Below, piece by piece: positions 12,833-61,832 of a stretch of DNA of 64,000 nt (position 1 is the stretch's first letter; each line of letters begins with the position of its first letter). Below the pieces are notes generated by a model, which ran no database searches, was not told the DNA's origin, and saw only the letters and a program-made list of their open reading frames with translations. The stretch spans positions 1,419,164 to 1,483,163 of the forward strand of contig NC_069000.1 of the NCBI RefSeq assembly GCF_001194135.2, in the 5' to 3' direction. The translations under genes were made by a program, and so were the position numbers. The DNA comes from Octopus bimaculoides. Its lineage: Eukaryota.

Positions 12833-13146
12833 TTAGTTGAGTTCGTTTAGTTCACGAGGAAGGGCGCTCATTTTCCTGTGCTTCAGATGTTCTGTGATGA
12901 TTTGGCTAAACTGAGGATGTTGTAGTAACTGGTAAGCCAGAGGAAGTAAAAACTGGATGGTGGAATTGAAGATGTCACCACCAAAACAAAAGAGGTTGAT
13001 TCCCAGCTCTAAGCCTTCACCATAATCACATTCATCATTTGCAAATTGAATCAAAGTCATCAGTTCTTGTAATGGCTCAAAATTTTGGTTTCTGTCTTCT
13101 TCAGTTTTACTGTCAAGAATCTTCTGGAACATTCTCTTCAAAGCAG
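12833..13146 (-). CDS. HPF1: HPF1 exon 7 (catalytic C-terminal domain, stop)
   Basis: ttcttcttccAG|; AALKRMFQK...[25 protein letters not shown]...LLPLAYQLL...ELN-TAA. Confidence 0.96.
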
Positions 13147-16100
13147 CTGGAAGAAGAAAAAAAGGAAATAAACATCTGTAAGTTGAAGGATGTGGCAAGG
13201 ATCAAAATAAACATATGTAAAGATATATTTTTATGATGTTCCTCTACAGGAGTCAAACATCAACAACTTCTACACAATCATACTTTTTATTTGAGAGTCA
13301 CTACAGTTCCTGTGGAGTCAGAGGAGGATTCTGAAGACATATTCCAAAACAACTGAGAGTGTCTACTTGTTGTGTGGCTGCTGTGTACTGGGAGACGGGG
13401 AGTTTAGTCAGAGAGAGAGAGAGAGAGAGTCAGTCTTCATACTATAAATATGAAAGTCACCTTCAATGATACAAATAGTTAAAAAAAAAAAGAACAAAAG
13501 AGAAGTTTTTAAGCAAGATCTACCTGGAGTTTCTGGTATTGGACGGTAACCAACTTCATTCTTGTCTAACTTGACCACAATTCCAGCACCATGGAAACCT
13601 TTGCATACTGTTTTCTTGTCTCGTTCCTTCATCGATTTGGTTTTCAACTCCAGATTGAAGTCAAGCTTTTTTGCCCATTCAGTTAAATCTGATTGGAGTT
13701 GAATGGCAGCAGATTGCTTTGGTTTGGCAAGTTTCTTTGATTTAATGCTTTCAGCCAAATAGAAACTGGAATGGGAAGAAAAATACCAAAATGGAATTAT
13801 TTGTCCTAACTTCAGCAAAACATTTCATTATGAAAAAATATATATACAAACACACACACACACATATATACATACATACACATGTATACACACACACACA
13901 CACACACATAAATACATACATACATACACATGCACACACACAATTTTCTCATCTACTCCGAAACCTCTATGTGTCTACTTGAAATGCTAAAAATAGCAAC
14001 CAAGTTGCTCCCTCTCAAATCACACTGAAACAACTTTAACATGGGATACAAAGAAGTAGGTTATCCTATCTCTGAGAAACTTTAATGAGTGTAGATCTGA
14101 TCAATCAGGGTTTATCTAGGCTGGAACTGGTTGGAAACAAAATCAAGAAAAGCCAACAGTTCATGAGGAAATGTCCACTTACAATACCAGTCACAGGTTA
14201 CATTATACAAACATAGATCAACCCTAGCACTTGATGCGAAATGGTTTAGCACAAGGAAATGTTGGTCTTCTAGTAATTCTTGCCCCAGCTAGATTACTTT
14301 ATGTGGACCCTCGTACTTCACTGGTCCTTAATTTTACTGATCCCAGAAGGGAGAACTTCACAACATAGAGAGCTTGCTATTAAATAGCACAATAAATTTT
14401 GTCCAACACTCTACCAATTCTAGTGACAAGTCTAATGTGCAGTATGTTATAAAGGGGTATCTTAGTTTAATAGTACATGGCATTCAGCTAGAATTTGAGA
14501 GGTACAGGGTTCGATCCTCTGTAGAGGCTTGCTGGTCACATATTTCACTGGCAGTGCCCCAGCATGGCCACAGCCTTAAGGCCAAAACATGTAAAAGAGT
14601 AAAGACAGAACACAGTAATATAAAACTATGACAATGCTGTGTTACCTGAGAGCTGCAAAAAGGTTTTCACCACGTGGAATGATGGCAGGACTTTCTTTGG
14701 CAGAATTAGCAGCAACAAAGACTGGTGCCTCTGTCGGGACATCTCTGTAATTCACAAGAAAACCATAAATTCAAAAGGGAGGGTGCTTCTCAAAAAGGCA
14801 GTTTATTTCCACGGAAACATGGAAAGAAAATGATTAAAATTTTCTTACCTGAAATAACCTAAATGGAATTGAGTTGTGTCATCGCCACGAATTACTGTCT
14901 GGAACTCTGGAGGGTCCAGGTAATAGCGCCAGTGAATGAGGTAGTTAGGGTAACGACCCTTGCTGTTTTTGCCATTTAATTGCTTGTGTTTACCAGCCAA
15001 AATATCAAAAGGTCCAACTAACTGGAACCCAAGAACATTACTGAAGCAATCTGGAAAAAGAAAAATTTCTTAAAATTAAAATTAACTGAACAAAAGATAC
15101 ATAATGATAGCAAGACATGGATGATGAATGTAGAGGCTATGTGAAGGCTGGAAAATGCACACTGGACACTCTGTACAGTGGTTGGTCACAGGAAGGGTTA
15201 AACAACGACAGTCTATTTGTCTGTTAAGCCAACAAGGAACATTCTACAGTCATGTGACCTGCTAGAAACAGCAGCTGAGTCTACCTCAAATAATGCTGTT
15301 TAGTTTTTAAGAAACAAAGACACAAAGTAACAATCCTGGATAGATTCAAAGTGGAGCAAAAAAAAGAAACAGGATGGTCATGGCTGGAACATCAAAAGTT
15401 TGTCTAGTTGACCTGTGGTTCAACAACAACACAAAGAATAAATAACAAAAAAAAATACAACAGATCTTACTGGTGGGATTTTCTGGATTAGTTGCTTCAC
15501 AGAACTTCCAGAGTTCATAAAAATCGTCTGGCATGTCAAATAAGAATTTCTCACGAATGTTTTCCTTGATGTCTTCAGGGGAAGGTGGAGGCGTTAAAGT
15601 TAACTCTTCTTCACATTTATCTGAAAAGGATTAAAAAGATAAAAAGTCTTTGTAAAACGAAATGTGATTAAAAAAAAAAAAAAAAGAAACCCTTTTTGAT
15701 ATCCGCCTTTCCTTGCTGAAGCAGATCCCCTGCGACCAAATGCCCTTCCTGTCAGCAACACTCATCTGTTTCAAAGGAAAGTAACATTTATCGTTGATGG
15801 CCAGACACGGAAGAAATGAAAGACACCACTTGTATGACAGTGACACTCATTTACAACTATCGTATGATGTTGAGATCAGGAAACACAATCACACCCCCAC
15901 ACACAGTGGGATTCCTTGCTCAAGTTGCCGTGCGATTGGACTAAACCCGAAGTCTTTTTTAAAATAATGTATATCTATGGGATCGACAGATGTATACAAC
16001 ACAATTTGGCAGAGGACCAGCAATTTCAAGAAAAGGAGTTGGTTACATCGACACCCAGTAACCACCTGGTCCTTTTTGCCCAGTGTGTTAATGATTGTCT

Positions 16101-18132
16101 TTATACAAGATATTAGGAAAATATAATGCTCACCTTGGCTTCCTTTATCCACGGGTTTGCTAGATTCCCCTGATGTTCCAGGGAGGCTCTCATCCTGCAG
16201 CTTTGCATCATCACTTGTCTTTTCAGTCTCCCTTAATACATCAGTGTCATCATCAGATGATGTAGACCCCGTTTTATGTGGATCTAATTTGGGCTTTTTA
16301 GAAAAAGGCTCTGTATTATCCTTTGCAATAGAAGAAAGTTTGCATTTATATATATATACACACACATACATACATATACATAACATATATAACTGGGACG
16401 CTATCAGTTACGAAGACACAGGTTCCAGCTGATAGCCAATCAACAGAACTACCTGCTTCTGATATCAAAATGAGTAAGACAAGATTAGGTAAATTTACCT
16501 CTTCAATTCTCCAGAATTATATTTGGAAAAAGACTCATACACATTAATATCCATCCATAGACATCGGAAAGATAAGGAATTTTGTTTTTAAATATCTCGG
16601 TCAAATGAATGAGGCTCATGTTAAAATGGCATACAGAAACTCGACTAATTAACAAAATAGACGTTAGTATGACAAAAATTGACTCGGAATGCAACACAGA
16701 AAAGAATATTGATTGTTAAACACCCAAAATTATTTAGATACTTTTTATTAGCAATCTCAATTACAATCGGGTCAAATTTGAGAAAAAAATTCTTGGAGAA
16801 AAAAAAAAAAGGTACCTATCACCTCTGCTTCAAACTCTTTCAATTCCAACAACAATGGTGACCAATTTTTATTTCTGAGGATGATGCAATACTTGCAAGG
16901 TAATGGTTTCAAATAGGTAGGGAGACAGTTACGAGGAATCAGAGACTACTCATTTTGTTCGTCGCACCAATAATAATAAACTTTTTGCATAGTGCTCTGG
17001 TGCACTACAACCAGTCGGAAAAAGGTAAAAAAAAAATTTGCGGGTGGTGGGGTGGGGAATAGAAAACAGCAATATGTAAAAAAAGGGGGCAATGATAACC
17101 AAACGTGCATTCGTAATAGAAATATAACCCCAAAAGGGAGAAGATTGAACAGCAAAAGTCATAAAGAGGAAATACATTAGGAGTAGATTGGGGAATTTCG
17201 GGAAACGGAATTTTTGAGAGATGCAGTGTTTTAAAAGAGACGTGGTTAGTTTATTTCGATGGAAGGATTTCTAGAGATGCAATGATCTACCTATGTGCCA
17301 CAAATCCATCAAGAAAGAAATTTTGGCGAAGCTATATTTTAGCGGGCAGTGAAATACTTTTAGTTTGCTTGTTAAGATTTCTTTGTTATACGCAACAAAA
17401 TACCTAAACATGTTTTCATGGAACATCAAAGTTTCATCTTGTTCTTTTTAAATCTGTAAACATTAACCTTTTGTTTTACATTTTCAAATAAAATAACCCA
17501 AACAGTCATTGGATCCCTTTTAATAAACCCCTTTTTCATATAAGAACATGTTGCCGTTTCTATGGTTTCAAAAATAAATAAAAACTTGAAAAGTGATACT
17601 GAGAATTTTTCACGCGCCATAAATATATTCTAGCAGGTATTACAATAAAAATGCAACCAATATATCAGCGACTGCATTATCTAATATATCTTTCCTTTGT
17701 AAAAGACTATAGTAAGGTAATAAAAGAAGTCTGGCTGTTATTTCAAGCAGCTCGAGCTGCGTAGGCAGGAAGTGTCAGAAATTAGAAGGATAACAGAAAA
17801 TACGTGTCGTTTATCTGTTTGGCAAGGAATATTCTAACATATGTGAAACGATTCTGAAGAGAAATTTGTAGGATGAATAAATAAAAAGGGGGTGACATTT
17901 GGCGGGAAACTCGAGTTGTTTACAATATTATTACACGTGCTGAGACAATAGATGAATATGTCAAACTGACCTGGTCATCCTGGCTCTGCTGCTCTTCACT
18001 TTCAGGTTTATTTGGGTGGCGGTATTCCCGCAAGTGATTCGGATTCTTCCTATAACATTTCTCACCATATTTACACATTGGTCGTTTATCTTTATTCGCC
18101 GTGACAACGGTGACGGGATTTACAGCTGCCAT
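12833..18132 (-). CDS. HPF1: Histone PARylation factor 1 with N-terminal PBZ zinc finger, 7 coding exons, 451 aa
   Basis: Hand-spliced join (minus) 18132-17971, 16320-16134, 15620-15471, 15050-14849, 14744-14646, 13765-13524, 13146-12833 = 1356 nt. All introns GT-AG, phases 0,1,1,2,2,1. Translation contains HPF1 family motifs [57 protein letters not shown] and [15 protein letters not shown]. Confidence 0.96.
13524..13765 (-). CDS. HPF1: HPF1 exon 6
   Basis: cccattccAG|; SFYLAES...[29 protein letters not shown]; |GTAGAT. Confidence 0.95.
14646..14744 (-). CDS. HPF1: HPF1 exon 5 (absent from the ORF track)
   Basis: ttacAG|; [33 protein letters not shown]; |GTAACA; phase 2 to 2. Confidence 0.93.
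14849..15050 (-). CDS. HPF1: HPF1 exon 4 (absent from the ORF track)
   Basis: ctttttccAG|; [22 protein letters not shown]...[28 protein letters not shown]; |GTAAGA. Confidence 0.95.
15471..15620 (-). CDS. HPF1: HPF1 exon 3
   Basis: ccttttcAG|; [50 protein letters not shown]; |GTAAGA. Confidence 0.93.
16134..16320 (-). CDS. HPF1: HPF1 exon 2 (acidic linker, KKPK basic patch)
   Basis: Acceptor ctttcttctattgcaaAG (less common AAG), [12 protein letters not shown]...DKGSQ, donor caag|GTGAGC; phase 0 to 1 fits both neighbours. Confidence 0.8.
17898..17909 (-). promoter_or_regulatory. E2F-type site TTTCCCGCCAAA in HPF1 intron 1
   Basis: Plus strand tttggcgggaaa, about 60 nt inside intron 1, within a locally CpG-richer stretch (about 17.0-18.3 kb). 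Confidence 0.45.
17971..18132 (-). CDS. HPF1: HPF1 exon 1 (PBZ zinc finger)
   Basis: MAAVNP...[25 protein letters not shown]...QDDQ has the C-x5-C-x6-H-x5-H PBZ spacing; donor cag|GTCAGT at 17970. Confidence 0.92.
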
Positions 18133-24850: not shown

Positions 24851-25142
24851 CCAATGTTAACAAACTAACTTTCTGTTTGAAACACTTTTGTAGCTTCTTT
24901 GAATCACTGTTTAAAACCCACATGTAGCATTCAAAAAAATAGGGTCCAGGTAGGGTCTTAAAACCTAAATTTTGCATAGGAACAACACAACCTCGTTAAA
25001 GACAAGATAATCACATCATCGTTAACAACAATAACAAAAATCAAGGTTATTTCTAATGCTGTTTATCACTTAAAAGTTACAAACAAATAAGAATTCAAAC
25101 AAAGAAACATATATACATATACATATATATATNNNNNNNNNN

Positions 25143-26172: not shown

Positions 26173-26384
26173 TTAGCAGTCACTACTCTGTTCTTTTCTA
26201 AGTTTGTCCAATTCCTCTTCAACAAGTTTAGCAAGGTCATATCGCTTCATGTCGTAAAGAATTTTACAGAAGTTTATTGCAGTACTGTTCAACGATGTAT
26301 TATTCCAGTCAACCAATACATTTATACAGGGATCCTGGCTGTTTTCATATCTTCCAACCAAAGAAAGATCACAGTTCAAATGAC
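26173..26384 (-). CDS. Gene 2 exon 9 (Death domain C-half, stop)
   Basis: tttcctcAG|(G)HLNCDLSLVGRYENSQDPCINVLVDWNNTSLNSTAINFCKILYDMKRYDLAKLVEEELDKLRKEQSSDC-TAA. Matches the death-domain pattern W..LA..L / P...L..W / L..M.R.D. Confidence 0.9.
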
Positions 26385-28425
26385 CTGAGGAAAGAAAACA
26401 CAACATCAATCAAGAAATATTTTCATATGTGTGTGTGTGTGTAATAAGCAGAAAACAGGTATGGTATTCAATGCTTTATAGGACAGATCCATGTTTCTTC
26501 AAAATACTAAAAAAATTACATAATTTGGTGAAACATTATGCAACCTTGCACTTTATCTCATCAGTGTCCCACAGTAAATAAAATAACAGCCAAATTATAA
26601 TAATAATTGCATATAGTGCTCAGGTGTGCTACAACTCATTAGAAGAGGTTAAAAGAAGGAACAGAAAGCAGACAGAATAAAAGACGAAAAGACAAAAGTG
26701 AATGGCTTTTATAGGGGACTGGAAGCCAAATTTGAGAATGTTCAAGAAAACCTGTCCCCCACCACCGCTTCACACTGACCAGTCAATAGACTGATCACAT
26801 GGAACATATATGGTGGTTTGCTCCTGATGTCTGACCATGTAACCAGGGATTTGTTTCAAATCTCCACTACATTACAAGGCACAGAAGTCTTAGTAGCAGA
26901 TGTAAAAGTGTCCAGCAGTAGCAGAGCTGGAATTGCTAGGTCCATAGTTCAATTTGCTTGAGTGCCACCAGCAACAAATATCCACTTGTAACTGCATGCC
27001 CAACAGGTTAGACATCCCACAAAAACATAAAACCACCACCTTGTGTTACATACCCAGCCTCTTTCATCCTAGAGCAATTCATAATGTTGGTTGGTGAGGT
27101 TAACATCACAATTGGATTTCAAATGTAAATTTTGAGAGAGAGAGCAAAGATAGAAAACAAGAGCATCAAAGCTCCCTGCATAAAATGTGTGAACACTAGC
27201 TTAGCCAAAAATGCAGAGTCATGCCAGTGATAAAGGATCAATAAACATACACTGAGATTATGCATAAAACTAAGAGACAAATATTCCCCTCTGGGGAAAA
27301 AGTTATATTAACGAAACAACAAACAGATTTTGCATCCGTATGATTTGTCTGCATCACAATTATTCAGAAGTTTTAACAAAAAGATTTAGCAAGGGAGATA
27401 ACTCCAATAAAATCTAGTCGCTCTCCAATGGGAGAGTCATAAGTGGAATGCCTCTGACTACGTGTCTGCTTGATCAGTGCTGAATTTTGGGCTGTCCAAC
27501 ACCAATATTGCCCTTCTCAATCAGTTAGTTGCAATTCTTCAAGAACAAACAACGGAAATGAAAATGTTCGAAAAATAGTTTTCAATGCAACAGTCACAGG
27601 TGTGACAGTGTGGTTAAGAAATTTGCTTCCAAACCAGAAGGTCTTAGTTTCAAACTTACTGCACAGCACTCTGGACAAGTGTGTTCTACTACAGCCTTAC
27701 TTCAACTAAAGATCCTGAAACTGGAATAACCCCATTGTACATACACGTGTGTGTGTGTGTGAATGTCTGTTGACATTGTGTGATAGTTGTAAACGGGTGT
27801 CATTGTAATACAAGCAGTGTCATTCGTTTCCAGTCTTCCTTGGAAACACATTTAATCATGGGGAAATATTACCTTATCTGGAAATAGGTGAGGGTTAATG
27901 AGAGGAAGCACATCAGGCCATGAAAAAGTCAGCTTCGACAAATTCTGGCTGACCCATACAAGCATGGAAAGGAGGACATTAAAACAACGGCAATGGTGAT
28001 GAATGTAGGGAGTAGATTCTCTTACCAGCCAGCATTTTCCAGTTGAGACTTGGGTTAGAATTTAGTTCCAGACAGATGTGAAAGAGAATTTTAGAATTCA
28101 ACTCAAGTACAGACATTTTTTCAACATCGATCACTTTACCCTGAAAATAGAATAAAAACAAAGAAAAAAGATGAAAAGGAACTCGAAATAGCAGGGTTCA
28201 ACATAGCTTCTTCTTAATCTTTTGAAAATAACTTTGGCACAGGCCTGACTTCATGGTTAAGAAGTGTGCTTCCCTGCCATGGGGTTTCAGGTTCAATCCC
28301 ATTGCATGACATTTTGGGCAAGTGCCTTCTACTATAGCCTTGGACAGACCAAAGCCTTATGAGTGAATTTAGTAGACAGAAACCGAAAGAAGCCCGTCGT
28401 GTGTGTGTGTGTTTGTATACATATC

Positions 28426-28465
<40 letters not shown>

Positions 28466-31400
28466 TATATATATATTTATATACATGTTTTACTTAGGCA
28501 TAGCGATAGTAATAACCTGGGGTTAGAACCCCATATATATATGCCTCAGAATAAAGCATTAGTTGAATACAGAGCATAATAAGAGATTAAATAAATGGCG
28601 AGGGAAAAAGAAATTATGCAATGGACTACATTAGCTTACAGCTGTTTCTGCTGTAAGATGCAATGCACTCAACCAAGTGCTTGTGCATCACCTTATAGCT
28701 TCCATAGGAAAGCAATTATATACATGGAAAAGAGCTAACTTTATACCCCATTTCTTATGTATTTTTATATTTTCAATGGTGATCGTTTCCATATATATAT
28801 AAATTAACTCTGACGCATTGCAGTCCAATGATAGCTTAATGACCAAAACACTAAAGAACACACACACACACAGGAATAACTTACAATTTGCTTCACTTGA
28901 GTTTCATTAATGAGATGTGTGCAAAAGATTGGAGATTCATGTTTCCTCTGTGAATGGCAACAATAGATGCATTGTGGGTTGTGGCATCGTCCGTAATACT
29001 TGAAGAAGCTGTATGGAAATACAGCTACGCAGACTTGATGAAGTTGTTGGAATATATGAAATAGTGTTTCTTCATTGGACTGAGTTGTGATTCTAGAGAA
29101 AAATAAAATGAAAATAAAGGCCAGGTTAATATATATATACTATGCACCCCTCCACCATCACCACACGCACACACACACACATTCTTTCAAGCCGAGTGTT
29201 TATTCTGCAGAATGTCAGCTTTCTGAAAATTCCTTCCTTGCATATGTTTCTGTGCAAATATTTCCTCCAAATAGTAATCAAACATGTTGATCTTACAGGT
29301 ATTGTATCAAGTAAAGAGAATGCTAAAGAGTTAACAAGAAAATAAATGAATGGAAAACATAACTCACTCTGAGGTGATTTTGACCTGCTGGGTCGCCCAC
29401 TGGTATTGAAAATGAACCATATGTTTTCTGACCATAATTTTACACTGGGATAATTGGATCTCTTGAGGTAATTCCCAACCGTATAAATTTCCAAAGGAAA
29501 TGACCAGTCTAAGAAAGTCTGTGTGCTGTGCACTGCTGCAGAACTGAATGTAGAGTGAGAAAACATTGTGCATCAAAGGGTTCTGCACTTCCATTTGGTA
29601 ACTGTGTTGCAAACAAGGGATGTAGTATTTCGTGTAGGCGTATTGGCCTGATTCCTTTAAGCTTAATATCACATTGTGGCTCTCGAGTAATGCAAGGACT
29701 GAATGGCTGAAGACATCACTGGGATACAAGTTGTCGACCAGAACCTGTTGGTCCACTATTCCGTTGGGTATTTTATGGTATTGAGAGAAAGTGTGACTTC
29801 TGCTCACTAAAGAAATTGGTTGATATGCAAGCTGAGACATAGAGTTTAAAATGTACTCAATGTTTACATATAAACTATTTCCTTGTGGTAATAGAGCAGA
29901 TTTTCTGGAATTTACTGGAAAATATAAATAAATAAAAAGTTAATATAAATTGAAAAATATGTATATTCTATTTCTTATTGTGTGCTGAAAAGGTCATTAT
30001 GTCAATAATAACACACAGTCAGTGCGTGTGTTATTATTGGTGCAATGACCCTCCCAAAACACAAGATTTGTTTCAACACACAAAATTCACATCAAGAATC
30101 TTGCAAACCAGATACAGAAACAAACGAATATTCTACTGATTTAATTTTCATTTTTACACCATTTTGTGAAGAACAGGTTTCCAGCGGCACCAGTCATGGA
30201 TTCCCTGCATTTTTCACAGTGAGAATAAGAAGGGAGTATATGTGCAACTGTAACAGAACAAATATACAAAGTATTTTGGTCTGGAATCAATGGTTTCATT
30301 GGTTTTCCTCACCAATGTTTACATTTTTCAATGAAATTCAAAGAGAGATGCCTATATATAAATTCAAAAAATGGCTTGCATTGGGTTTCCTATTTTATTT
30401 AGACATATATCTGTATGAAGATAAACACACACACACACACACATATATCATATCTGTTGCCTTGTTTTTATGTTTGCTTTTCCATGCTAGCAAGGGTTAT
30501 ACTAATATAGTATTAAAGCACTATTTTAGCAATGGATACCCCTCACATCACCAAATCTTTCTTGTTTTTCAAGTATGAGATCTCTTATTGAAGGTGTGAA
30601 GTAAGCCAGGGATTTGTTAACAGAAGAAACAACAACCATCACAGTGTCCAAAGCACACACACATACATCTTTATCAACATTTGGCAGAAGCAACAGAACG
30701 ACTCAAGGGTCCGAAGTATTTCTTGTAGGATAAGCAACCACAGAGAGGTTTCCTACATTGGTTTATAAAAGACAGGTAGTTAATAGAGAATGGTAAGCAG
30801 TGGATTGAATGAAATATGATCTGTTGAATGCGCAATGGAAAAATCTGAGCTCAACTGTGGATTTCTTGCATTTTCTGTCTACGAAATCTAATGACAAGGA
30901 TTTGATTGGCCCAAGGTGCCGTATAGTGGGACCGAACCTGAAGCCATCTTAACATCAAGCCTGCACCAATCAATGAAAGATGTAAACCCAATAAACAGAT
31001 GCTTTTAAACAAAAATCCTTGGAGGTATCTATTCCATCCAAATTGTATCAGATGGTCATATTTTGACCCTGAGCATCAAAAATGCTGTGAGTCATTGGCT
31101 GGTTTATTGGAAACTTAGAACCAGCAACCTCAATGTTTACAAATTGATAATGATGATGATGATGATGATGATAGTAATTGCAATCAAGATTTTCATTATT
31201 CTTGCCTTCCTCCTCCTCCTCCTTCCCTTCCTTCATCACCTTCTTCAGTTGTATTAATTTAATCTTTAATATTACAATGATAAAAGTTAATTGATGAAAT
31301 TACAATAGAAATAGTAAATATTTTTCCATTCCAACAAACAACTTACCTCCAATATAATATTTGAAGGAACTCATTTCACGCACTGTTTGATGAAGATCCT

Positions 31401-34400
31401 GCTGGGAAATTTTATCAAAGACTTTGTGAACAGTTTTGAAAAAGTCAGTTGTAATACTTTTACACAGACCAATATGGTGAAGCTTGTGCAGAGCATAAGC
31501 TGCATGGCAACTCATTGAAATTTCCTTTTGTTTAGCGAGTTCAAAGATAGAATTGAAAAACGTGTCACTGTTTTGGTCAGAATTTGAAGGAATAACAATG
31601 GGTTCTACCAGTATTTTGTCAATGAAGAAATTGTGTTGATTGCGACATGGTTCAGTGTTTTCCTGACAGATACATTTCACTTTAATTTGTACCTCTTTTC
31701 CAACACAAGACTGAATCGTATGGACATATCTCTTCAGCATTCGCAGTTCAGCTTGTTGGGATCCTTGTGTAACAGTGGACAGCTGACAATCCAGCATGAT
31801 CAAGAAAATGCTGTTTTTAGTAAACGTAAGTTTCATGCAATGATGAAAGAAAGACTCATCTGAGGAAGCCAGTAACTCAAGTGCTATCAGATGCTTCACG
31901 TCCAAATGGTAAAACCAGGATCGTTTACTCCAGGACTCCACAAAAAATGTCCCCCTCTGAGTCCACACACAGCAAGCTTTGAAAGCAGCTGTATCATTAT
32001 TGAGATTTGTTTCTATCATTGGATAATTTTGAGACGCTTTGTGACGGTTCGATTTCAGTCGGGTCACCAGGAAGTTGTAATGCACCATAGCAGCAGGGCC
32101 ACACAAAAACACTCTTTTTATTGGACAAATCCTCTTCTGTTCAACACACGGATTATTTCTATGCTTGAATTTGACAGGTCTTTGAATAATTAGTCGTAGC
32201 TCTGATTCTGTTTCTATTTTCTGGTCAATAACTTTGTTCTGGAGGATAAAAGAAAAGAATCTTTTTTAAAAAGTGAAGAAAAAAATTAATCGAAAAAAAT
32301 ATTATTTTATCTGGAAAAAAAAAAAAAAAAATTATATCAATGTTTTATTCTAAAATTAAATGTTGCATTTCAGTAAAGTCAAATTAGCCAATTTAGTAAA
32401 CATACACTCCATTAAATTTATCACGTTTATTGAGGCATGGCCTGTACAACTGATTACATTTGTGGGAAATTTCCAAAGTTCAATGACAAATGCATTTATT
32501 TAAGTTTTGTGATTATACAAGATTAGCATAACACCTCATATGTGTACCTAGCTTTAAAAGTTGCTCTCAAAATCATTAAGTTTTATGACAATAATTAAAT
32601 AATGTGTTTGATAGAATTTTCCTCAAACACCAAAGATAAATATGTTAACCACCTTACAATATGTATATTGTAGAGTGGTTAACATTTAATTATTATATAT
32701 ATATCCAGAAATATATACACTCACCACACTTAGGTCTTGACAAGCAATGCCATTGAGAGAAAGAATGAGGTCACCAACTTTTAACTTCCTGGCAGCATCA
32801 TTTGATACACTGGTTATAAGAAAATACTGGGAAAAATAGAAATAAGAAAGAAAAATTGCTTAATTTCAAAACTTCCACTTGTCTTTCTATTTTATTCTCT
32901 ATCAGGTGGATCTGCTTTCTGAACTTTATTTAATTCTAAAAGAGTTCACAGAAAAATTGATGGCGTTTGAACAAAAGACACAGCAGAGCAGCCAGACACT
33001 TGTGGAGAAGGCAACCTCAGACTGTGTCCAGTTTGCTCTGTAAGGTGGTTGACAAATGAAAGCAGAGAATGCAGAGTCAAGAGGGGCCTAAAGTTTGGTT
33101 GAGGACAGGATAAAATAGAAATAAAGATATCACATACAATTATGGACACATGCCCTTAAAAATTCCAACCCAGCTTCATCATCGTAATGAAGAACAATAG
33201 TTTTAAGTCTTTCCTTAAGGAAAATGTATTTTTTGCTTTTCCTTGCCACTTCAACCCCTGATATGGCCAGTTTTATTACCATTTTGGTGTGGGACTGTTC
33301 TACCCTAAGCTTCTCGATTAATTTGGATACGTTAGGGTGATGGATGTTAACTCTTCTACTGAAGGCGTGGTGCCAACCTTCTAGAGAGTTGTTGGTTTCC
33401 AGGAGATCATTGAGAACTCTGTAGTAGCACTACCATAAAGAAATGGCAGATAGTGGTCATCGACATCGACCACATTGCATGATTCCTAGCTAAGTACACT
33501 CAAAATAAGACAGGAATTCCTCCAAAATTTTATCAATTTGAACACTTGGGCCAGATATGGCCAGTTTAAACCAGCCAAAGGGTTAAAATTCAGAACAAGC
33601 TAGAAAGGATTAGGAAACCCACAGGTTTACTCACCATAGAAGTGTTCACCGAGTTTTTAGGAACCAACTGAAAAAAAAAGAAGAAAAGAGATTGGTTAGG
33701 TATCAAATAATATATGAATAACCTTTACTGCTACAGACACAAGGCTTGAAATTTTGGGAACAGGGGTGAGTCAATTACATCAATCCCAGGGTGCAACTGG
33801 TATATTCTATCAATCCTGAAAGGATGAAAGGTAAAGTTGACCTTGACAGAGTTTGAACTCAGAACTTAAAAACAGATGAAATGCCACTAAGCAATTTGCC
33901 CAGCATGCTCTGCTGGTTCACTGCTGTGATGAAAAATATAACAATTTACATAAACATTTAAAGTTATAAAGAAATAAAAGGACATATTGGATAATGGTGT
34001 CCAAATGAAAACCAATGACAGTGGCCACCACTTATGAAAGAAGCCACCTGGGTTCGTTTGTCAATGTGTCAGCACAAGGAGGCCAAGGACTTATTCATTT
34101 CGTCTCTGGAAGGATGCAAAAGTAAAGTAGAACTTGGTGGAATGCAAAATGAGAAATGTGAAGAGAAATAATAATAAGCTTGGCAGTAAAATATTTACCG
34201 AGGAAGGAAGAACTTCATACTGAAATCCAAATTTGCCTGCACTGGATCGTTTCAATATCACAGTTTTTGGTTTGGCATCCCACTGGATGCTATCTGGATT
34301 CTGGAAGACAGCATCTTTCAGTGAGACTGTATCAGTAGCGATGGGTCTTGGCACTGGTTGCGAGTGACAGCTACCATCAGCATCCAGCAGCAGTGAATTC

Positions 34401-35782
34401 ATGCTGTTAGTACTGCTGCTGTTGCTGCTGCAGACACTGGAGTTCAAACTCATCCTCTGAATATTATCATTAGAATCATGATAGAGAGATCGGTACGCTT
34501 CCAAAAGGACAACGGTGCCGGACGAGAGACTCAGGACACTCTCAACCTCCATTGGCGTCTTCAAGTGACGGATGTCAATTTCATCGATTTTTGTAATGTA
34601 GTGGTATTTGGTCAACTCTCGTGACAAGCAGGTGTCTTTCACCTGCGTCACCTTGGCTATGTTTCCACTGGGAAATTTCTGAAGAACAGAAAGAAAAAAT
34701 GGATGAGTGAATTAGAATGTAATTAAAGAATACATCTAGGATACATTCATGCACACACACACACACAAAGGTAATACGTACATATGCATATATTCTTTTC
34801 TTTTATTTGTTTCAGTCATTTGACTGTGGCCATGCCGGGGCAACGCCTTTAGTTGAACAAATCGACCCCAGGACTATCACATAGATAGATAGATAGATAT
34901 ACACACATACAGATAGATAGATATGCACACATACAGATAGATAGATATGCACACATACACACATGCCATGAACACATACAAGGTGGGCCAAAAGTCAAGA
35001 AATATAAAAATACAGTTGGTGTAACAGCTGAAATCGCCAGAGTATATATATCCACAGACTGCAATATTCAGTCACACCTTGTTTATACACACACACACAC
35101 ACACCAAACATACAAAACAGATTTGTAATGCCGGAATCGGTATTATGAGGTGAGTATAAGGGCAGGAGAAGGGACTCCAGGAACTCTCTAATGGGACTAA
35201 ATGCTGCCTAACTTCCATATTTCACTTGTTACATTTTAGAAGTCAGAAAGTGCTCCAGCTGGACCAGTCACAGCCCAATGACTAAGACCAGTAAAAGAAA
35301 AGAATAACAACTGCATCATCACCATCATCATCATCATCATCATCATCATCTAAAGCCAGTTTTCCATTGCACAAGTGCATCAGATTCCAGTGTTAGCTTT
35401 GGCATGGGTTCTGCGGCTGGATGCTGCCCTTCCTAATGCCAACCACTTTACAAAGTGTGGATTGGATGCTTTTATACATCATCACTAGTGAGGTTGTTAT
35501 GCAGCTCACAAGACTAGAAACCCCTAGAGAAGAAGGGATCAGTTTTAGGCTGTGAAATAGGGGGACAGAGTATGAGAGATAGAGTATGAAATAGGGGGTT
35601 AGAGTATGAGAGATAGCGAGAGGCATCAAAGATATGTTAAAAAAAACAATTCTTACTTGAATAATTATGCTGAAACCTAATTTCCCATCAGCTCTTCGTG
35701 GGACAGGAATCTTACATGGTTTACCAGAATCAATAATGTCCTCATCTAGCCTAAAAAGCGGTTCGTCTTCTGCCATGCCCAT
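26173..35782 (-). CDS. Uncharacterised 904-aa protein: PDZ-PDZ-degenerate Roc-like-COR-like-Death, 9 coding exons
   Basis: Join (minus) 35782-35657, 34678-34199, 33667-33635, 32826-32725, 32238-31347, 29914-29368, 29092-28885, 28140-28026, 26384-26173 = 2715 nt, open throughout. All introns GT-AG, phases 0,0,0,0,1,2,0,1. An in-frame TGA upstream of the ATG in the same exon fixes the start. PDZ and Death calls are strong by motif; Roc/COR is weaker. Confidence 0.88.
28026..28140 (-). CDS. Gene 2 exon 8 (Death domain N-half)
   Basis: ctattttcAG|GKVIDVEKMSVLELNSKILFHICLELNSNPSLNWKMLA|GTAAGA. Confidence 0.9.
28885..29092 (-). CDS. Gene 2 exon 7 (Cys/His-rich; absent from the ORF track)
   Basis: tttttctctAG|(E)ITTQSNEETLFHIFQQLHQVCVAVFPYSFFKYYGRCHNPQCIYCCHSQRKHESPIFCTHLINETQVKQI|GTAAGT; phase 2 to 0. 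Confidence 0.88.
29368..29914 (-). CDS. Gene 2 exon 6 (COR-like)
   Basis: tattttccAG|(V)NSRKSALLPQGNSLYVNIEYILNSMSQL...PNGIVDQQVL...LALLESHNVILSL...KYYIPCLQ...KITS|GTGAGT; phase 1 to 2. Confidence 0.85.
31347..32238 (-). CDS. Gene 2 exon 5 (end of PDZ2, Roc-like region, start of COR-like region)
   Basis: tatcctccAG|NKVIDQ...ELRLIIQRP...KRVFLCGPAAMVHY...LELLASSDESFFHHCMKLTFTKNSIFLIMLD...FKYYIG|GTAAGT; 892-nt open exon. Confidence 0.88.
32725..32826 (-). CDS. Gene 2 exon 4 (PDZ2 core; absent from the ORF track)
   Basis: tttttcccAG|YFLITSVSNDAARKLKVGDLILSLNGIACQDLSV|GTGAGT; LKVGDLILSLNG is the typical PDZ L..GD.I..vNG motif. Confidence 0.92.
33130..33471 (-). mobile_element. MULE/Mutator-type transposase C-terminal relic in gene 2 intron 3
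   Basis: Translation GRCR*PLSAISLW*CYYRVLNDLLETNNSLEGWHHAFSRRVNIHHPNVSKLIEKLRVEQ...KSKKY...RLKTIVLHY...EFLRACVHN matches the PLFPxxLWN...RTNNxxEGWH...HPNI...YLRAIAHN tail of animal MULE transposases. Two stops lie upstream in the same frame. Confidence 0.85.
33635..33667 (-). CDS. Gene 2 exon 3, 33-nt microexon LVPKNSVNTSM
   Basis: Acceptor ttttttttcAG and donor atg|GTGAGT are both consensus; symmetric phase 0. Confidence 0.75.
34199..34678 (-). CDS. Gene 2 exon 2 (rest of PDZ1, Ser-rich linker, start of PDZ2 KRSSAGKFGF)
   Basis: gttcttcAG|KFPSGNIAKVTQV...HYITKIDEIDIRHL...TVVLLEAYR...KTVILKRSSAGKFGFQYEVLPSS|GTAAAT. Confidence 0.88.
35657..35782 (-). CDS. Gene 2 coding exon 1 (start; PDZ1 GLGF-type loop RRADGKLGF)
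   Basis: Acceptor ctcctttcAG before 35812, then 30 nt of UTR with an in-frame TGA, MGMAEDEP...GKLGFSIIIQ, donor caa|GTAAGA. Confidence 0.85.
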
Positions 35783-40436: not shown

Positions 40437-42830
40437 CCTAATTGTCAAGTTGTTATTCACTGACGGAAGTAANNNNNNNNNNNNNNNNNNNNNNNNNNNN
40501 NNNNNNNNNNNNNNNNNNNNNNNNNNNNNNNNNNNNNNNNNNNNNNNNAAAAAAAAAAAAAAAAAAAAAATGTAAAATCAAATCAAAATGAAAATACATA
40601 GAATATAAAAAAAAACACCATGCATCTCTGTAGTTGTAACCAGTTCTTAGCTTGGTTGACCTACTTCTTCCATTAAATTACAAACATACTGTTAATATTA
40701 AGTGTTAGGTTTCAAATGGAAAATTTAGTTGAGCAGATAAATAAACACATAAACAAATAAACAATCTATGCACATCAAAATTTTGTTTTGTTGTTTAACC
40801 CCAGGTCAGGCTTGACTAAGTGGGTCTTTAAGCATTGATGATCCTTCTCTGTTTTTAAGACTACAATAATATATAAGAGGACAGGGTGTACTTTGAGGGG
40901 GATGTTTGCTTCTATTTTTAGTAGATTCAATGACCATGCAGAAGATCATATATATATATAAGGGCCTTTGGGTTAACCTAGAAAAGAAACAAAGTCTTAG
41001 TAAGTAGGAAGGCAGACAAACCGCAAATCCCTCAGGTAGATGGCCCTGCTCCATCTGTAGAAAAGATGTAGGTAAAAACTCCATAAGATGCACCTGGTGT
41101 AATTTTTGGAACCTGTGATAGAGGTAGACCCAGGAAGACATAGGATGAGGGAGTGAAGCATGATCTTCAAACCTTGGGCCTCACAGAGGTAATGACTTAT
41201 GACTGAGACATTTGGCAATGTGCTGTGAAATCATAGTCATGGCTGACGCTGGTGTCACGTAATTGGCACCCGTGCCAGTGGCATAGAAAAAGCATCTTTC
41301 GAGTGTTGGGCTTCATGGAGGCAAAGTAGCTGAGCCCCTTTCGATTGTTGGGCCTCACAGAGGCAATGACCAAGACCTTTGGCATTATGTTGTGCTTGAG
41401 AAGGAAACCCATCAAAGCAAGTAAAATTGCAGTTGTAGCAAATACCAGTGTCACGCAAATGGCACATAAATGCACCCATTACGCTCTTGGAGTGGTTGGT
41501 GTTAGGAATGGTATCCAGTCATAGAAAGCATGCCAAATCAGACTGGAGTCTGGTGCAGCCCTGGTCAAACTGTCCAACTCATGCCAGCATGGACAATGGA
41601 TGCTAAATGACGATGATACACACGATGGGCTTCTTTCAGTTTCTGCCGACCAAATCCACTGACAAGGCTTTGGATAGCCCAAGGTTATTGTAGAAGACAC
41701 TTATCCAAGGTGACACACAGAGGGATAGAAACTGGAACAATGTGGTTGGGAAGCAAACTTCTTGTCACGGGTAGCATTGGTGAATTTCAAGAAGCATAGA
41801 ATTTATATGGGCGTGTGTGTGTATTTGTCCTTTTCCACTTGACAACTGGTGTTGGTTTGTTTATGTTCCCATAACTAACTTAACAGTGTGGAAAAAAGAA
41901 GCTAGTAGAATAAATCCCATATAATAAGCACTGGGCATGATTTGATCAACTAAAGGCAGTGCTCCAGTATGGCCACAATCCAATGACTGAAACAAGTAGA
42001 AGAATGCAAGAATCAGCAGAAATGAGAAAAAGAAATCCGTTCGTTATCGCAGATATTAAATTACATCCCTGAGGAAGAATAAAATATCAAGAATTTCAAT
42101 ATGGTTTGGTTTCAGTTCTTGCTGCGACAGAAGCATATTGTGGCTGCTGACACAGTACGAGACCAAGCCTGGATCACAAAATACCAGATGTTTGAATGAC
42201 AGTGTTCTAAAATAAATAAATAAGTAGATAAATAAAACGAGCTAAGGGAAGTAACTCAAATGGACATAGGCATGAATTTGGATAAGTTAGAGGAATTATG
42301 TACCAAGCGACAGATAGAACAAGTATTAGGCTTACAAAGTCCTGGAGTTGATTTGTTCGACTAAAGGCAGTGCTCCAGCATGGCCGTAGTCAAATAACTG
42401 AAACAAGTAATAGAATAAAAGAACACACACATTTATATAATGGATTTTGATTCAATATATAATACAACGTGATAAAAACTTCAACACAACTCATCCATGA
42501 AATATTAGCCTTCGTTTTTATTTCCTCCGCCAATTCTGATTGAAATGACAATTATTATACAAGTGTCTATCTAAACCAGTGTGTTTGAGTGTGTTTATAT
42601 TCTTTTCTTTTTTTTTTCCAATCTAAAATCAGTCAAATAGAAAAACAAGGAAGGGACAAGACATCCAGCCAATCAGCCACTTCAGATATTTTCAGTCAAC
42701 ACATTGAGTGCCATGTATACAATATAATATATACACGGCACTTTACAAAGTCAACCATGGTACTGTGCTGTATAATCAAACATGTAACTATGTATTTCTG
42801 AAGCCAATAACCTAATCACATAGCCATACC

Positions 42831-45343: not shown

Positions 45344-45497
45344 NNNNNNNNNNNNNNNNNNNNNNNNNNNNNNNNNNNNNNNNNNNNNNNNNNNNNNNNN
45401 NNNNNNNNNNNNNNNNNNNNNNNNNNNNNNNNNNNNNNNNNNNNNNNNNNNNNNNNNNNNNNNNNNNNNNNNNNNNNNNNNNNNNNNNNNNNNNNNN
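45344..45497. other. Assembly gap (N run)
   Basis: N characters. Other gaps at 25133-25142, 40473-40548, 60205-60214 and 60762-60771. Confidence 0.99.
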
Positions 45498-59186: not shown

Positions 59187-61832
59187 TTTACATCAGGAAG
59201 TTAGTATAACACTGAACCAAGGATGGTTTGAGACAGGTCTGAGATAAAATAATATTTTCCCCCACCACTGCTGTTGGTTTGTTTATGTCTTTGTAACTTA
59301 GCAGTTCTGCAAAAGAGACCGACAGAATAAATATCAAGCTTAAAAAAAAATCAATACTGGGGCCAGTTTGTTTGACTAAAAACTCTTCAAGGCAGTGCCC
59401 CAGCATGGCCACAGTGTAATGACCGAAACAAGAAAAAAAAAAAAAGCCCGTCCCATGAGTTGTTTTAAATGACATTTCTGATGTCGTTAACGGTTTTAAA
59501 AAACTATCAACCACTCTCTTCTCACTATTCAGGTTTTTTTATAGCCCAGGAGCGACACCCAGAAGTCACAAGCATTCTGCCCTGACCCATGGACATGTGC
59601 CTGCACACACACATTTCATAACCACCACACGTTTTACAACCAGCACACAAGGAATTGACAAAAACATTAAAGGTTAATTACCTAAAGTAATTAATATATA
59701 TATAATAATGTGAGAGTGTGCAGCTTAGTGGTTAGGATGTTGCACTCACAATTGTGAGATCGTGGGTTCGATTCCCAGAGCAGAGCTGGGTTCAGTCCCA
59801 CTGCATGGTACCTTCGGCAAGTGTTTTCTACTATCGCCCTGGGTAGACCAAATTTGTTCCACACCAGCAATCAACTATGCTTGAGAAATTCCATAGGTGG
59901 CCGCCTGTGAATATAGTAAAGCCTCTGTACTAAACAGTATGAAAGCTATCTTATCTACTTGAACCAGAAGCTTTCTCATCTCTTCCCATCACTCCCTTCT
60001 CCTCATAGGTCCTACTCTTCCTATGAGAAAACCTCAGTGTGACCACTTGACCTGCTACAAACAACAGTCAAATCTCACTCACAGCATATCCCCTCACCTT
60101 TGAAAGAAAACAAAAAAAATGTATTGGCTATTGTGGATAATAAGAAATGGTGTCTAGTGAAAATACTGAGACGGGAGGGTCGCGATTGGGATGCCTTTGG
60201 TGAANNNNNNNNNNGGGGGGTTGCTTGATCCACTAAAAATAGCAGTCCCCTTCACATTTGACTGTATCATCAAATAAGTAAATATTTCTAAAACAACAAA
60301 ACAAACAAAACACAAACGGATGGTCACGGATGAATTCAATGCTTGCATCTCGCATCAGTGGATCCAGTTGCACATGCATGATCTCTGCTGCTTCAATAAG
60401 CGACAAACCGAGCTTCTATTAAGGTCGCTAGAAACAGCAGCTAAATTTCCATCATATTATACCTCATAATTTATTCATTATTACTATTGCAGGTAAATTT
60501 CTTCCGCACAACGAAACTAAATAACAATAGGAATCAACAAATGTGCCTCTACAAGGTAGCTTGACTTCCTAAAATTAACAGCCAAATTTACCTCAAGTAA
60601 GGATGCACTAGAGAACCTGGTGTCACACACACACACAATTAATAAATAAACGGTAACGTCTCTGTTAGAGTATCTTTGACCATAATAGCAGGTTCTGCTA
60701 GATCAAAACTGACCTGAAATTTAAGCAACATGCTTTTCTTTAAAGAAAAAAAAAAAAAAAANNNNNNNNNNAAAAAAAAAAAAAAAAATACAGCCATCTG
60801 CTTAAAGGTCAAGCTTGCACTTACCGATAATGTCTGATCTGTGACCCATTGTTACGCTGTCCTTTCTCTCTGTCTCGTGTCTCTTTCTGCTGCTACTGCT
60901 GCATTCCAAAGGAATGTAGTTCTAGGAACAACTGCATCCCACTGGAATTCCCCCACCACCACTTCCCTTTCTCTGTCCACGAATTTCTCTCTCTCTCTGG
61001 AATATTTCAAATGAATTCGGTCGACTGAACTTCACGCACTTGCTTTAGCCACTTCACGTGGGTCTAAAAATACCTTAGCAATCTATGGTTTTCACTGACT
61101 TCTCATACACAATTCAATAAAGGGGCATTTTGTTAAATATTTTAAAGAAGCCACACTTAGAAAACAACAAACACAACAAAAAAGTGCCTTTTAAAAAAAA
61201 TATTTATGTCTAAAACTATCAATCAATCGTATTTGTGAAAGAAATCGCTTTTATTCATTTACGGTATATATGCATGCAGAATATAAGTGTGTGTAATATA
61301 TATATTATATACATACACAAATATATATATATATTTATATATATACACGCACACAATTATATATATTTGGTTATTTGTGTATCTTGTTTTTAAAAACGAG
61401 GAAAAACATGATCTAAGGCAATGTACTCAATATGTAAATTAGAGTGGAGGAACTTATTAAAAAAATATATTACTCCTAAAAAAACCCCAAAAAACTAGTC
61501 ACAATTTCATGCCAATGTATGTGATGTGTACGGAATGGTTTAGAAGTGGAAGAAACAAACCCATCCCCCTGGGTAAAGGAGTATGGAGAGGGAGAGAAAG
61601 ATACACATGTATGTAAGTAGATAGATAGAGAGAGAGAGGAGGAGGGAGAGAGAGAGAGAGAGGAGAGGAGGAGAGAGAGAGAATCATTAATTTATGTGTT
61701 CTATATTTAGAAATTTCTATTACTACACGAAGATATTCACTTTTTCGTGCTTAATAAATGTGTATACAGAATGATTTAAAAGTTAGCTTGGAGGAAGAAA
61801 CCAAAAAACCCGGGCAATAGAAGTGTGTAAAA

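Follow-up and report, generated by a model that had tools for sequence, protein, structure and literature searches.

What kind of protein joins two PDZ domains to a death domain through a center that resembles the Roc-COR tandem of Roco proteins? The question is raised by a minus-strand gene of Octopus bimaculoides, located at positions 35782-26173 of a stretch of 64,000 nucleotides (the window; contig NC_069000.1 of assembly GCF_001194135.2, positions 1,419,164 to 1,483,163). An initial annotation, made from the letters of the window, had proposed this layout for a spliced frame of 904 amino acids. Our analysis indicates that the product is probably a mollusc adaptor of the order PDZ-PDZ-pseudoRoc-COR-Death, the Roc-COR core of which would be independent of nucleotide. 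Direct observation covers the exon structure, both PDZ domains and the death domain, the conserved architecture and the absence of the G motifs; the central region was approached by structure prediction and profile comparison.

Gene structure at the octopus locus

The coding sequence comprises 2715 nt (904 codons and a stop) when nine exons are joined, and every intron of this model has GT-AG borders. Two of the exons, the 33-nt microexon at 33667-33635 and one of 208 nt at 29092-28885, were placed by comparison with homologues. The length and the end coordinates are equal to those of the frame first proposed. Over its full length, the protein is 96% identical to RefSeq XP_029647517.1 (P0001 in our alignments), which is the 905-residue "uncharacterized protein LOC115221472 [Octopus vulgaris]". 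A tblastn search with this protein returned the same exons in the window, the microexon being too short for a match of its own, and the orthologue from Argonauta hians (74% identity to the octopus protein) also landed on them. The homologue match together with the exon structure indicates that the frame is a conserved gene and not a chance open frame; the octopus locus is a real nine-exon gene. Its features are given below, with residues numbered along the 904-residue protein.

35657..35782, minus strand: exon 1, residues 1-42, with the ATG, the conserved Met-Gly and the first PDZ1 strands including the carboxylate-binding loop GKLGF (donor GTAAGA; 100% identical to P0001 by tblastn)
34199..34678, minus strand: exon 2, residues 43-202, with the remaining PDZ1, a Ser/Asn-rich linker and the start of PDZ2 with its GKFGF loop (AG...GTAAAT; P0001 by tblastn; PDZ1 profile)
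33635..33667, minus strand: exon 3, the 33-nt microexon, residues 203-213 (LVPKNSVNTSM), a loop inserted within PDZ2 (AG...GTGAGT; the same 11 residues in P0001)
32725..32826, minus strand: exon 4, residues 214-247, the middle of PDZ2 (splice sites; Pfam PDZ at residues 182-266)
31347..32238, minus strand: exon 5, residues 248-544, with the end of PDZ2, the whole putative Roc-like pseudoGTPase domain and the first COR-A-like helices (splice sites; AlphaFold2; Foldseek)
32121-31531, minus strand: Roc-like domain, residues about 287-483 (alternating strands and helices in AlphaFold2; Rab and Roc matches in Foldseek; no Walker A, DxxG or NKxD)
31789..31860, minus strand: D[DE]xFFHxC..(L/M)FT..SIF...(F/L)D, the most conserved motif of the family, residues 374-397 (13-sequence alignment; placed by hhalign on LRRK2 E1399-D1420)
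29368..29914, minus strand: exon 6, residues 545-726, with the COR-A-like winged helix and most of the COR-B-like domain (splice sites; hhalign; Foldseek match to 3dpt)
Within exon 6, minus strand: predicted winged helix GIVDQQVL...LALLESHNVIL...YYIPCL, residues 596-646 (placed by hhalign on LRRK2 G1624-P1670; weak MarR match, E = 0.59)
28885..29092, minus strand: exon 7, residues 727-796, with the end of the COR-B-like domain (helix ...LHQVCVAVFP) and a Cys/His cluster (splice sites; alignments; hhalign against LRRK2 and DAPK1 up to ...EEWFP)
28986-28915, minus strand: Cys/His cluster, residues 763-786 (family alignments)
28026..28140, minus strand: exon 8, residues 797-834, the first death-domain helices (splice sites; Pfam Death)
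26173..26384, minus strand: exon 9, residues 835-904 and the stop codon TAA, with the remaining death domain and the C-terminus (splice sites; Pfam Death; PDB profile match to p75NTR)

The PDZ and death exons had been assigned to one gene, and a cephalopod orthologue of squid type (P0003; 993 residues, 34–37% identical) speaks for this assignment. It is encoded by a single uninterrupted open reading frame with flanking untranslated regions on RNA-type contigs of 3.5-4.2 kb from three independent sequencing runs. Because the octopus coding sequence spans 9.6 kb, these contigs are assembled transcripts, and the PDZ and death parts therefore lie on one mRNA. The PDZ-PDZ-X-Death layout was also found in independent gastropod and bivalve predictions. 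A 371-residue sequence (P0005, 91% identical) was rejected as transcript evidence, because it represents genomic DNA read through from exon 5 into the introns on either side.

PDZ and death domains

The C-terminal death domain proposed for this protein was recovered by Pfam (PF00531, residues 822-892, E = 1.4e-5, 25.5 bits against a cut-off of 22.6). The C-terminal 177 residues alone gave E = 1.4e-6, and the score ranged from 25.5 to 28.7 bits across scans. Compared with the PDB, the family death-domain profile matched p75NTR first (E = 5.8e-13), then NRADD, MyD88, IRAK-M and UNC5B, and hhalign aligned the domain of the octopus family with the death domain of DAPK1 at E = 4e-5.

Both PDZ domains of the initial annotation were likewise found, each by a different route. 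PDZ2 matched PF00595 at E = 1.5e-4 and 22.5 bits on the full model, slightly below the cut-off of 23.2, and at E = 3.4e-5 and 24.6 bits in a partial model lacking the microexon; gastropod and bivalve homologues are shorter at the alignment position of the microexon segment. From the octopus protein alone, Pfam did not detect PDZ1; a profile of residues 1-110 built from seven family sequences matched solved PDZ domains in the PDB (INADL, syntenin, PSD-95) with E = 6.6e-9. Pfam PDZ was found in five of five aligned family members, and the gastropod and bivalve relatives show two PDZ stretches by Pfam. On reading the sequence, the carboxylate-binding X-Phi-G-Phi loop is kept in both domains, as KLGF (residues 34-37) and KFGF (residues 190-193).

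The N-terminus thus consists of two PDZ domains, with no Pkinase or Ank match in Pfam scans of the octopus protein. ZU5, the mark of a ZU5-UPA-Death supramodule, was absent from Pfam scans of the octopus protein and family members at E <= 10, and the secondary structure predicted for the central region by AlphaFold2 is alpha/beta and helical, unlike the beta-rich ZU5 and UPA domains.

Met-Gly opens every full-length family member, octopus, scallop and Aplysia included (Potamilus has Met-Met-Gly), and this shared start suggests a conserved N-terminal feature. The residues that follow fit the myristoylation consensus in only some species of the family. With residue 6 off consensus in octopus, Haliotis and Aplysia, we make no claim of N-myristoylation.

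Distribution of the family

How widely this layout occurs was addressed with an exhaustive hidden Markov model search of 1.84 billion representative proteins, in which the profile covered the central region and contained no PDZ or death sequence except the last PDZ2 strand. The alignments for this search and for AlphaFold2 carried P0001 as the first row. Just 13 proteins were retrieved at E <= 1e-3, and two further word-indexed profile searches yielded zero new relatives. The distant relatives come from Haliotis rubra, H. asinina, Argopecten irradians, Aplysia californica and Potamilus streckersoni. Five long distant matches contain Pfam PDZ, Pfam Death is present in Argopecten and P0012, and the C-terminal regions of the Haliotis asinina and Aplysia proteins align with the death domain. 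The full-length alignment of the family is colinear from the conserved Met-Gly start to the death domain. As judged from these comparisons, the octopus gene belongs to a mollusc-wide, uncharacterized protein family.

No homologue has been given a functional name: they are entered at NCBI as "uncharacterized" or "hypothetical", and the UniRef name of the Potamilus homologue is "PDZ domain-containing protein" only. The initial annotation had recognized no named gene of this layout, and no characterized gene matches. Its suggestion that the gene is possibly lineage-specific fails for cephalopods, as gastropod and bivalve members were found.

Two further sequences deserve mention. One (P0016, DUF6993) matched in nine short stretches on the Cys-rich segment and was judged a spurious low-complexity match rather than a relative. 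The other, a 199-residue decapodiform-type sequence from Logan (P0006), joins the start of the COR-A-like domain directly to the end of COR-B, with about 150 residues skipped at a junction between ...MSQMAYPIL and PLIKQIRIV... when compared with L001-L003. Exon skipping in an isoform, or an artifact of assembly, may account for it.

A Roc-COR-like central region

The central region spans about 520 residues between PDZ2 and the death domain. Roc/COR-like patterning had been read there from nine motif strings, all of which are present in the given order at residues 288-646. We consider that this region most likely derives from, and folds like, the Roc-COR tandem that is the hallmark of Roco proteins (LRRK1, LRRK2, DAPK1, MFHAS1 and bacterial Roco), as suggested by models of modest confidence and a weak sequence signal.

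Two AlphaFold2 models were built. Model 2, from 13 mollusc sequences, reached a mean predicted local distance difference test (pLDDT) score of 58, with 164 residues at 70-90 and a predicted template modeling (pTM) score of 0.40. When model 2 was compared with the PDB by Foldseek (50 matches listed; the copy searched was without the DAPK1 Roc-COR structure), the 13 best matches were all Roco proteins, with E values from 7.5e-11 to 2e-5 over about 500-560 aligned columns. The best was LRRK1 (E = 7.5e-11, 545 columns), followed by the LRR-Roc-COR and Roc-COR structures of C. tepidum (E of 5-6e-10) and by LRRK2 (E = 2.6e-8 and weaker). The isolated COR structure 3dpt also matched (E = 2e-6). Rab GTPases ranked after the Roco proteins, with E around 1e-4 and target-normalized template modeling (TM) scores of 0.55-0.62. 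Model 1, from four cephalopod sequences, was poor (pLDDT 41) and was used only as a robustness check. Its first 200 residues alternate strand and helix in a G-domain-like manner, and its Foldseek matches, with E of about 2e-6 to 5e-6, again included Rab GTPases and the LRRK2 ROC domain. The Ras-like (Roc) fold was thus recovered on predicted structures only, in both models, with E from 1e-4 to 2e-6 and target-normalized TM of 0.5-0.62.

Sequence profiles provide a second line of evidence. The references were the Roc-COR of LRRK2, identical to PDB LRRK2 residues 1333-1865, and human DAPK1 (NP_004929.2). Aligned by hhalign with the LRRK2 Roc-COR, the 13-sequence family profile scored 29.0 (P = 0.0087) over 243 colinear columns, which extend from switch II to the COR-A winged helix. 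This score lies above those of all 200 composition-preserving shuffles (mean 15.8, standard deviation 2.5, maximum 24.0). A two-sequence profile of LRRK2 and DAPK1 aligned with the family from the winged helix to the last COR-B helix (...EEWFP against ...vc..v.P) at P = 0.02. Between them, these alignments cover Roc, COR-A and COR-B in the correct order. The proposed similarity of the center to a G domain and COR is thus seen both in the Roco proteins that head the Foldseek matches and in an LRRK2 alignment that exceeds the shuffles.

Several results weigh against a Roc-COR identity. Pfam Roc, COR, Ras and NACHT were unmatched even at E <= 10 in the octopus protein, five cephalopod-type sequences and 13 central regions, and none of the 13 family members reaches the gathering score of Pfam Roc or COR. 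The central region gave no significant sequence match in the PDB, profiles of five and 13 sequences included; the sole profile matches were a pyrophosphatase (E = 1.1) and a MarR winged helix (E = 0.59) on GIIL..L....LLE..gLI...yy.P. The probabilities given by hhalign are low (2-5%), with P-values of only 0.01-0.02. A global hhalign alignment of the Roc part with HRAS or the LRRK2 ROC domain produced nothing meaningful, and the family profile scored 19 (E = 0.21) against the DAPK1 Roc-COR, which is not significant, so that a specific derivation of the family from DAPK1 cannot be stated. Model 2 itself is modest, at the pLDDT and pTM given above, and its COR-A helices fall largely below 50. A COR following Roc is favored by Foldseek over some 500 columns, by 3dpt and by the colinear hhalign alignments, yet Pfam COR is missing and COR-A is poorly predicted. 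The global TM to Roco structures is only 0.21-0.26, with a root-mean-square deviation around 15 A. Such low values, to be expected if the relative placement of the domains in the model is wrong, mean that the match is local and domain-wise.

Much of this would also suit a different history, in which the center consists of one or more mollusc-specific domains of independent origin (a Rossmann-like alpha/beta part, helices and a winged helix) and its likeness to Roc-COR is convergent or an artifact of low-confidence AlphaFold models. The failure of single sequences and of profiles alike to match any Pfam family or PDB sequence, the pLDDT of 41 and 58, the global TM to Roco of about 0.25 and the absence of all G motifs fall on its side. 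However, Roco proteins alone make up the top 13 Foldseek matches, over about 500 columns and with the same domain order, and no STAND or other P-loop protein is among them. The COR-only structure matches by itself, the sequence-only alignments are colinear with LRRK2 through switch II, the COR-A winged helix and COR-B at a score above 200 shuffles, and Roc-COR followed by a death domain is the order of DAPK1. We hold an independent origin to be unlikely. A Roc-COR ancestry remains our preferred reading of the center.

Loss of the GTP-binding motifs

The center of the initial annotation can accordingly be kept as a predicted Roco-like fold, not as a canonical Roc/COR, as it lacks the GTP-binding motifs and stays below the Pfam thresholds. 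Within the Roc-like domain, neither Walker A ([AG]x4GK[ST]) nor NKxD was found in any of the 14 family sequences, and the same scan found GHSGSGKT in DAPK1, the positive control. The loop after strand beta-1 reads VRVFxCG(S/P/N)xA and is about three residues shorter than a P-loop. The DxxG position is occupied by x-P/S-D-D/E, followed by a near-invariant FFHxC..LFT..SIF..FD. G1, G3 and G4 are thus replaced by conserved residues specific to the family (VRVFxCGxxA; D[DE]xFFHxC; HTI). Because no member has GTP-binding motifs, the Roc-like domain, as far as can be read from its residues, is a pseudoGTPase. The loss is common to cephalopods, gastropods and bivalves, which indicates that it is ancient and that the domain is still under constraint.

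That constraint is strongest in the segment equivalent to switch II, the most conserved stretch of the protein, at the position of switch II and strand beta-4 in Ras-like GTPases. The invariant alignment columns are F100, H101, F108, T109, F114, H142 and T143, and D96, F99 and C103 are near-invariant. This conservation across Mollusca exceeds what a role in structure alone would call for, and it would be accounted for if the domain were a still-active, non-canonical nucleotide or metal switch that regulates the adaptor, its P-loop site being superseded by a new one made of invariant Asp/Glu, His and Cys (D[DE]xFFHHCC, HTI). However, no known ligand-binding motif was recognized. The invariant His-Thr is placed by hhalign on LRRK2 F1436-N1437 in helix alpha-3, a region that we take to pack against COR-B in published LRRK2 structures, and this packing could alone explain the conservation. 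We regard such a switch as quite improbable and prefer a domain that has lost its nucleotide.

STAND NTPases with a winged helix occur in many invertebrate death-domain immune receptors. A degenerate STAND protein (NACHT or NB-ARC) with a winged helix would share the succession of alpha/beta, helical, winged-helix and death-fold domains and would fit the weak MarR-type match, but it is hardly credible here. The 50 listed Foldseek matches include no STAND protein, Walker A and B are absent, Pfam scans at E = 10 returned neither NACHT nor NB-ARC, and the N-terminal domain matches Rab and Roc at a target-normalized TM of 0.5-0.6.

Between the COR-B-like and death domains sits a conserved Cys/His cluster. 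Its cephalopod form is C-x4-C-x2-CC-H...C-x-H, and that of bivalves and gastropods is CP-x2-4-C...H...C(C/G). The AlphaFold2 confidence is below 50 in this segment, and LRRK2 and DAPK1 are without a counterpart. The cluster may be a small zinc knuckle.

Proposed role of the protein

In the order that we propose, PDZ1, a linker and PDZ2 are followed by the putative Roc-like pseudoGTPase domain, the COR-like domain, the short Cys/His cluster and the death domain. The PDZ pair would, in keeping with the membrane or junction scaffold first proposed, dock the protein onto membrane or junction proteins by their C-terminal tails. As a constitutive structural module, the pseudo-Roc-COR would act independently of nucleotide. 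COR mediates dimerization in Roco proteins (PMC6337361), and the octopus module, by analogy with the COR of those proteins, would probably dimerize too. The death domain might then recruit a homotypic partner of the p75NTR, MyD88, UNC5 or DAPK1 type. As no catalytic domain is present, an adaptor is the best reading of the protein, which would connect PDZ-bound partners to death-domain signaling without enzymatic activity.

A more specific proposal is that the family constitutes a fourth metazoan Roco-type class, in which tandem PDZ domains replace the kinase and LRR parts, the Roc-COR is a GTPase-dead dimeric scaffold and the death domain is p75NTR/MyD88-like. We put this forward tentatively and with some doubt. 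Having no functional GTPase, the feature by which Roco proteins are defined, and staying below the Pfam Roc and COR thresholds, the protein is to be called "Roco-like" and not a confirmed Roco member.

Surroundings of the gene

The window is AT-rich (about 35-40% GC) with many microsatellites, which marks it as eukaryotic DNA, and (CA)n, (TA)n and (CTCT)n repeats lie around the exons, for example at 28214-28486. Runs of N marking assembly gaps occur at 25133-25142, 40473-40548, 45344-45497, 60205-60214 and 60762-60771. All of them lie outside the coding sequence, the closest one following the octopus stop codon by about 1 kb. Intron 3 contains a 99-codon open segment on the minus strand (33133-33429) with ...NNSLEGWHHAF..., reminiscent of transposase-derived sequence. 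Pfam matches are absent at E <= 0.1, and the segment is probably what remains of a decayed mobile element.

A neighboring gene lies downstream on the minus strand, with open reading frame segments at 12833-13198 and 13408-13818 and possibly also 15889-16386. The first two segments match Pfam HPF1 (histone PARylation factor 1, PF10228) with E = 2.7e-27 and 2.5e-18, and these matches cover profile positions 95-251.

Comparison with known systems

A review of Roco proteins recognizes LRR-RocCOR, LRR-RocCOR-kinase and DAPK1 (kinase-ANK-RocCOR-DD, metazoan only) groups, and PDZ domains occur in none of them (PMC6337361), in agreement with what had been said of the known Roco proteins. Only the DAPK1 group, among those described, has a C-terminal death domain after Roc-COR and no LRR, and the octopus protein follows the same order with its Roc-like, COR-like and death domains. 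DAPK1 differs in its own N-terminal part, which comprises a Ser/Thr kinase, a calmodulin-binding segment and ankyrin repeats, whereas the octopus protein has two PDZ domains there. It also keeps the P-loop GHSGSGKT, which the octopus family does not have, and the Roc-COR similarity between the two is not significant in sequence.

The predicted central region finds its best structural counterparts in LRRK1, LRRK2 and the Roco protein of Chlorobium tepidum (E from 7.5e-11 to 1e-8). The LRRK2 winged helix GIISRRD...LLEKFQIAL...YLLVP aligns with the octopus GIVDQQV...LLESHNVIL...YYIPC, and the two proteins are colinear from switch II to the end of COR-B. The octopus family is without the LRR, kinase, WD40, G1, G3 and G4 of these proteins and adds PDZ and death domains.

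The way in which a Roc-COR tandem works apart from GTP hydrolysis is still debated (PMC6337361). If our interpretation is true, the octopus family provides a natural GTPase-dead Roc-COR in the DAPK1 order with PDZ domains added, which could show a scaffold role of Roc-COR alone, and a further metazoan Roco architecture would stand beside the three reviewed groups.

PseudoGTPases such as pG1 and pG2 of p190RhoGAP and CENP-M keep the Ras-like fold, have lost the nucleotide motifs and act as structural or interaction modules. The octopus Roc-like domain would be like them in having a Ras-like fold without nucleotide motifs. To our knowledge, no described pseudoGTPase is a Roc domain with an attached COR, and full-text literature searches returned no paper on a PDZ-Roc-COR-Death protein or a Roco pseudoGTPase.

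The gene models of the family are already in RefSeq as "uncharacterized", and what is new here is the domain-level interpretation, by which a set of "uncharacterized protein" entries gains a domain-level description. Interest in Roco proteins comes from LRRK2 in Parkinson's disease and DAPK1 in cell death. Death-domain shuffling is common in lophotrochozoans, and the family is a candidate link between PDZ-organized membrane complexes and death-domain signaling in molluscs, the death-domain repertoires of which are poorly understood. On the membrane side of this link, the nearest likeness is to syntenin, INADL/PATJ and PSD-95, the best PDB matches of PDZ1, which share tandem PDZ domains with intact Phi-G-Phi loops; they differ in having no Roc-COR and no death domain, the two parts that the octopus protein, as we read it, would add to a PDZ pair.

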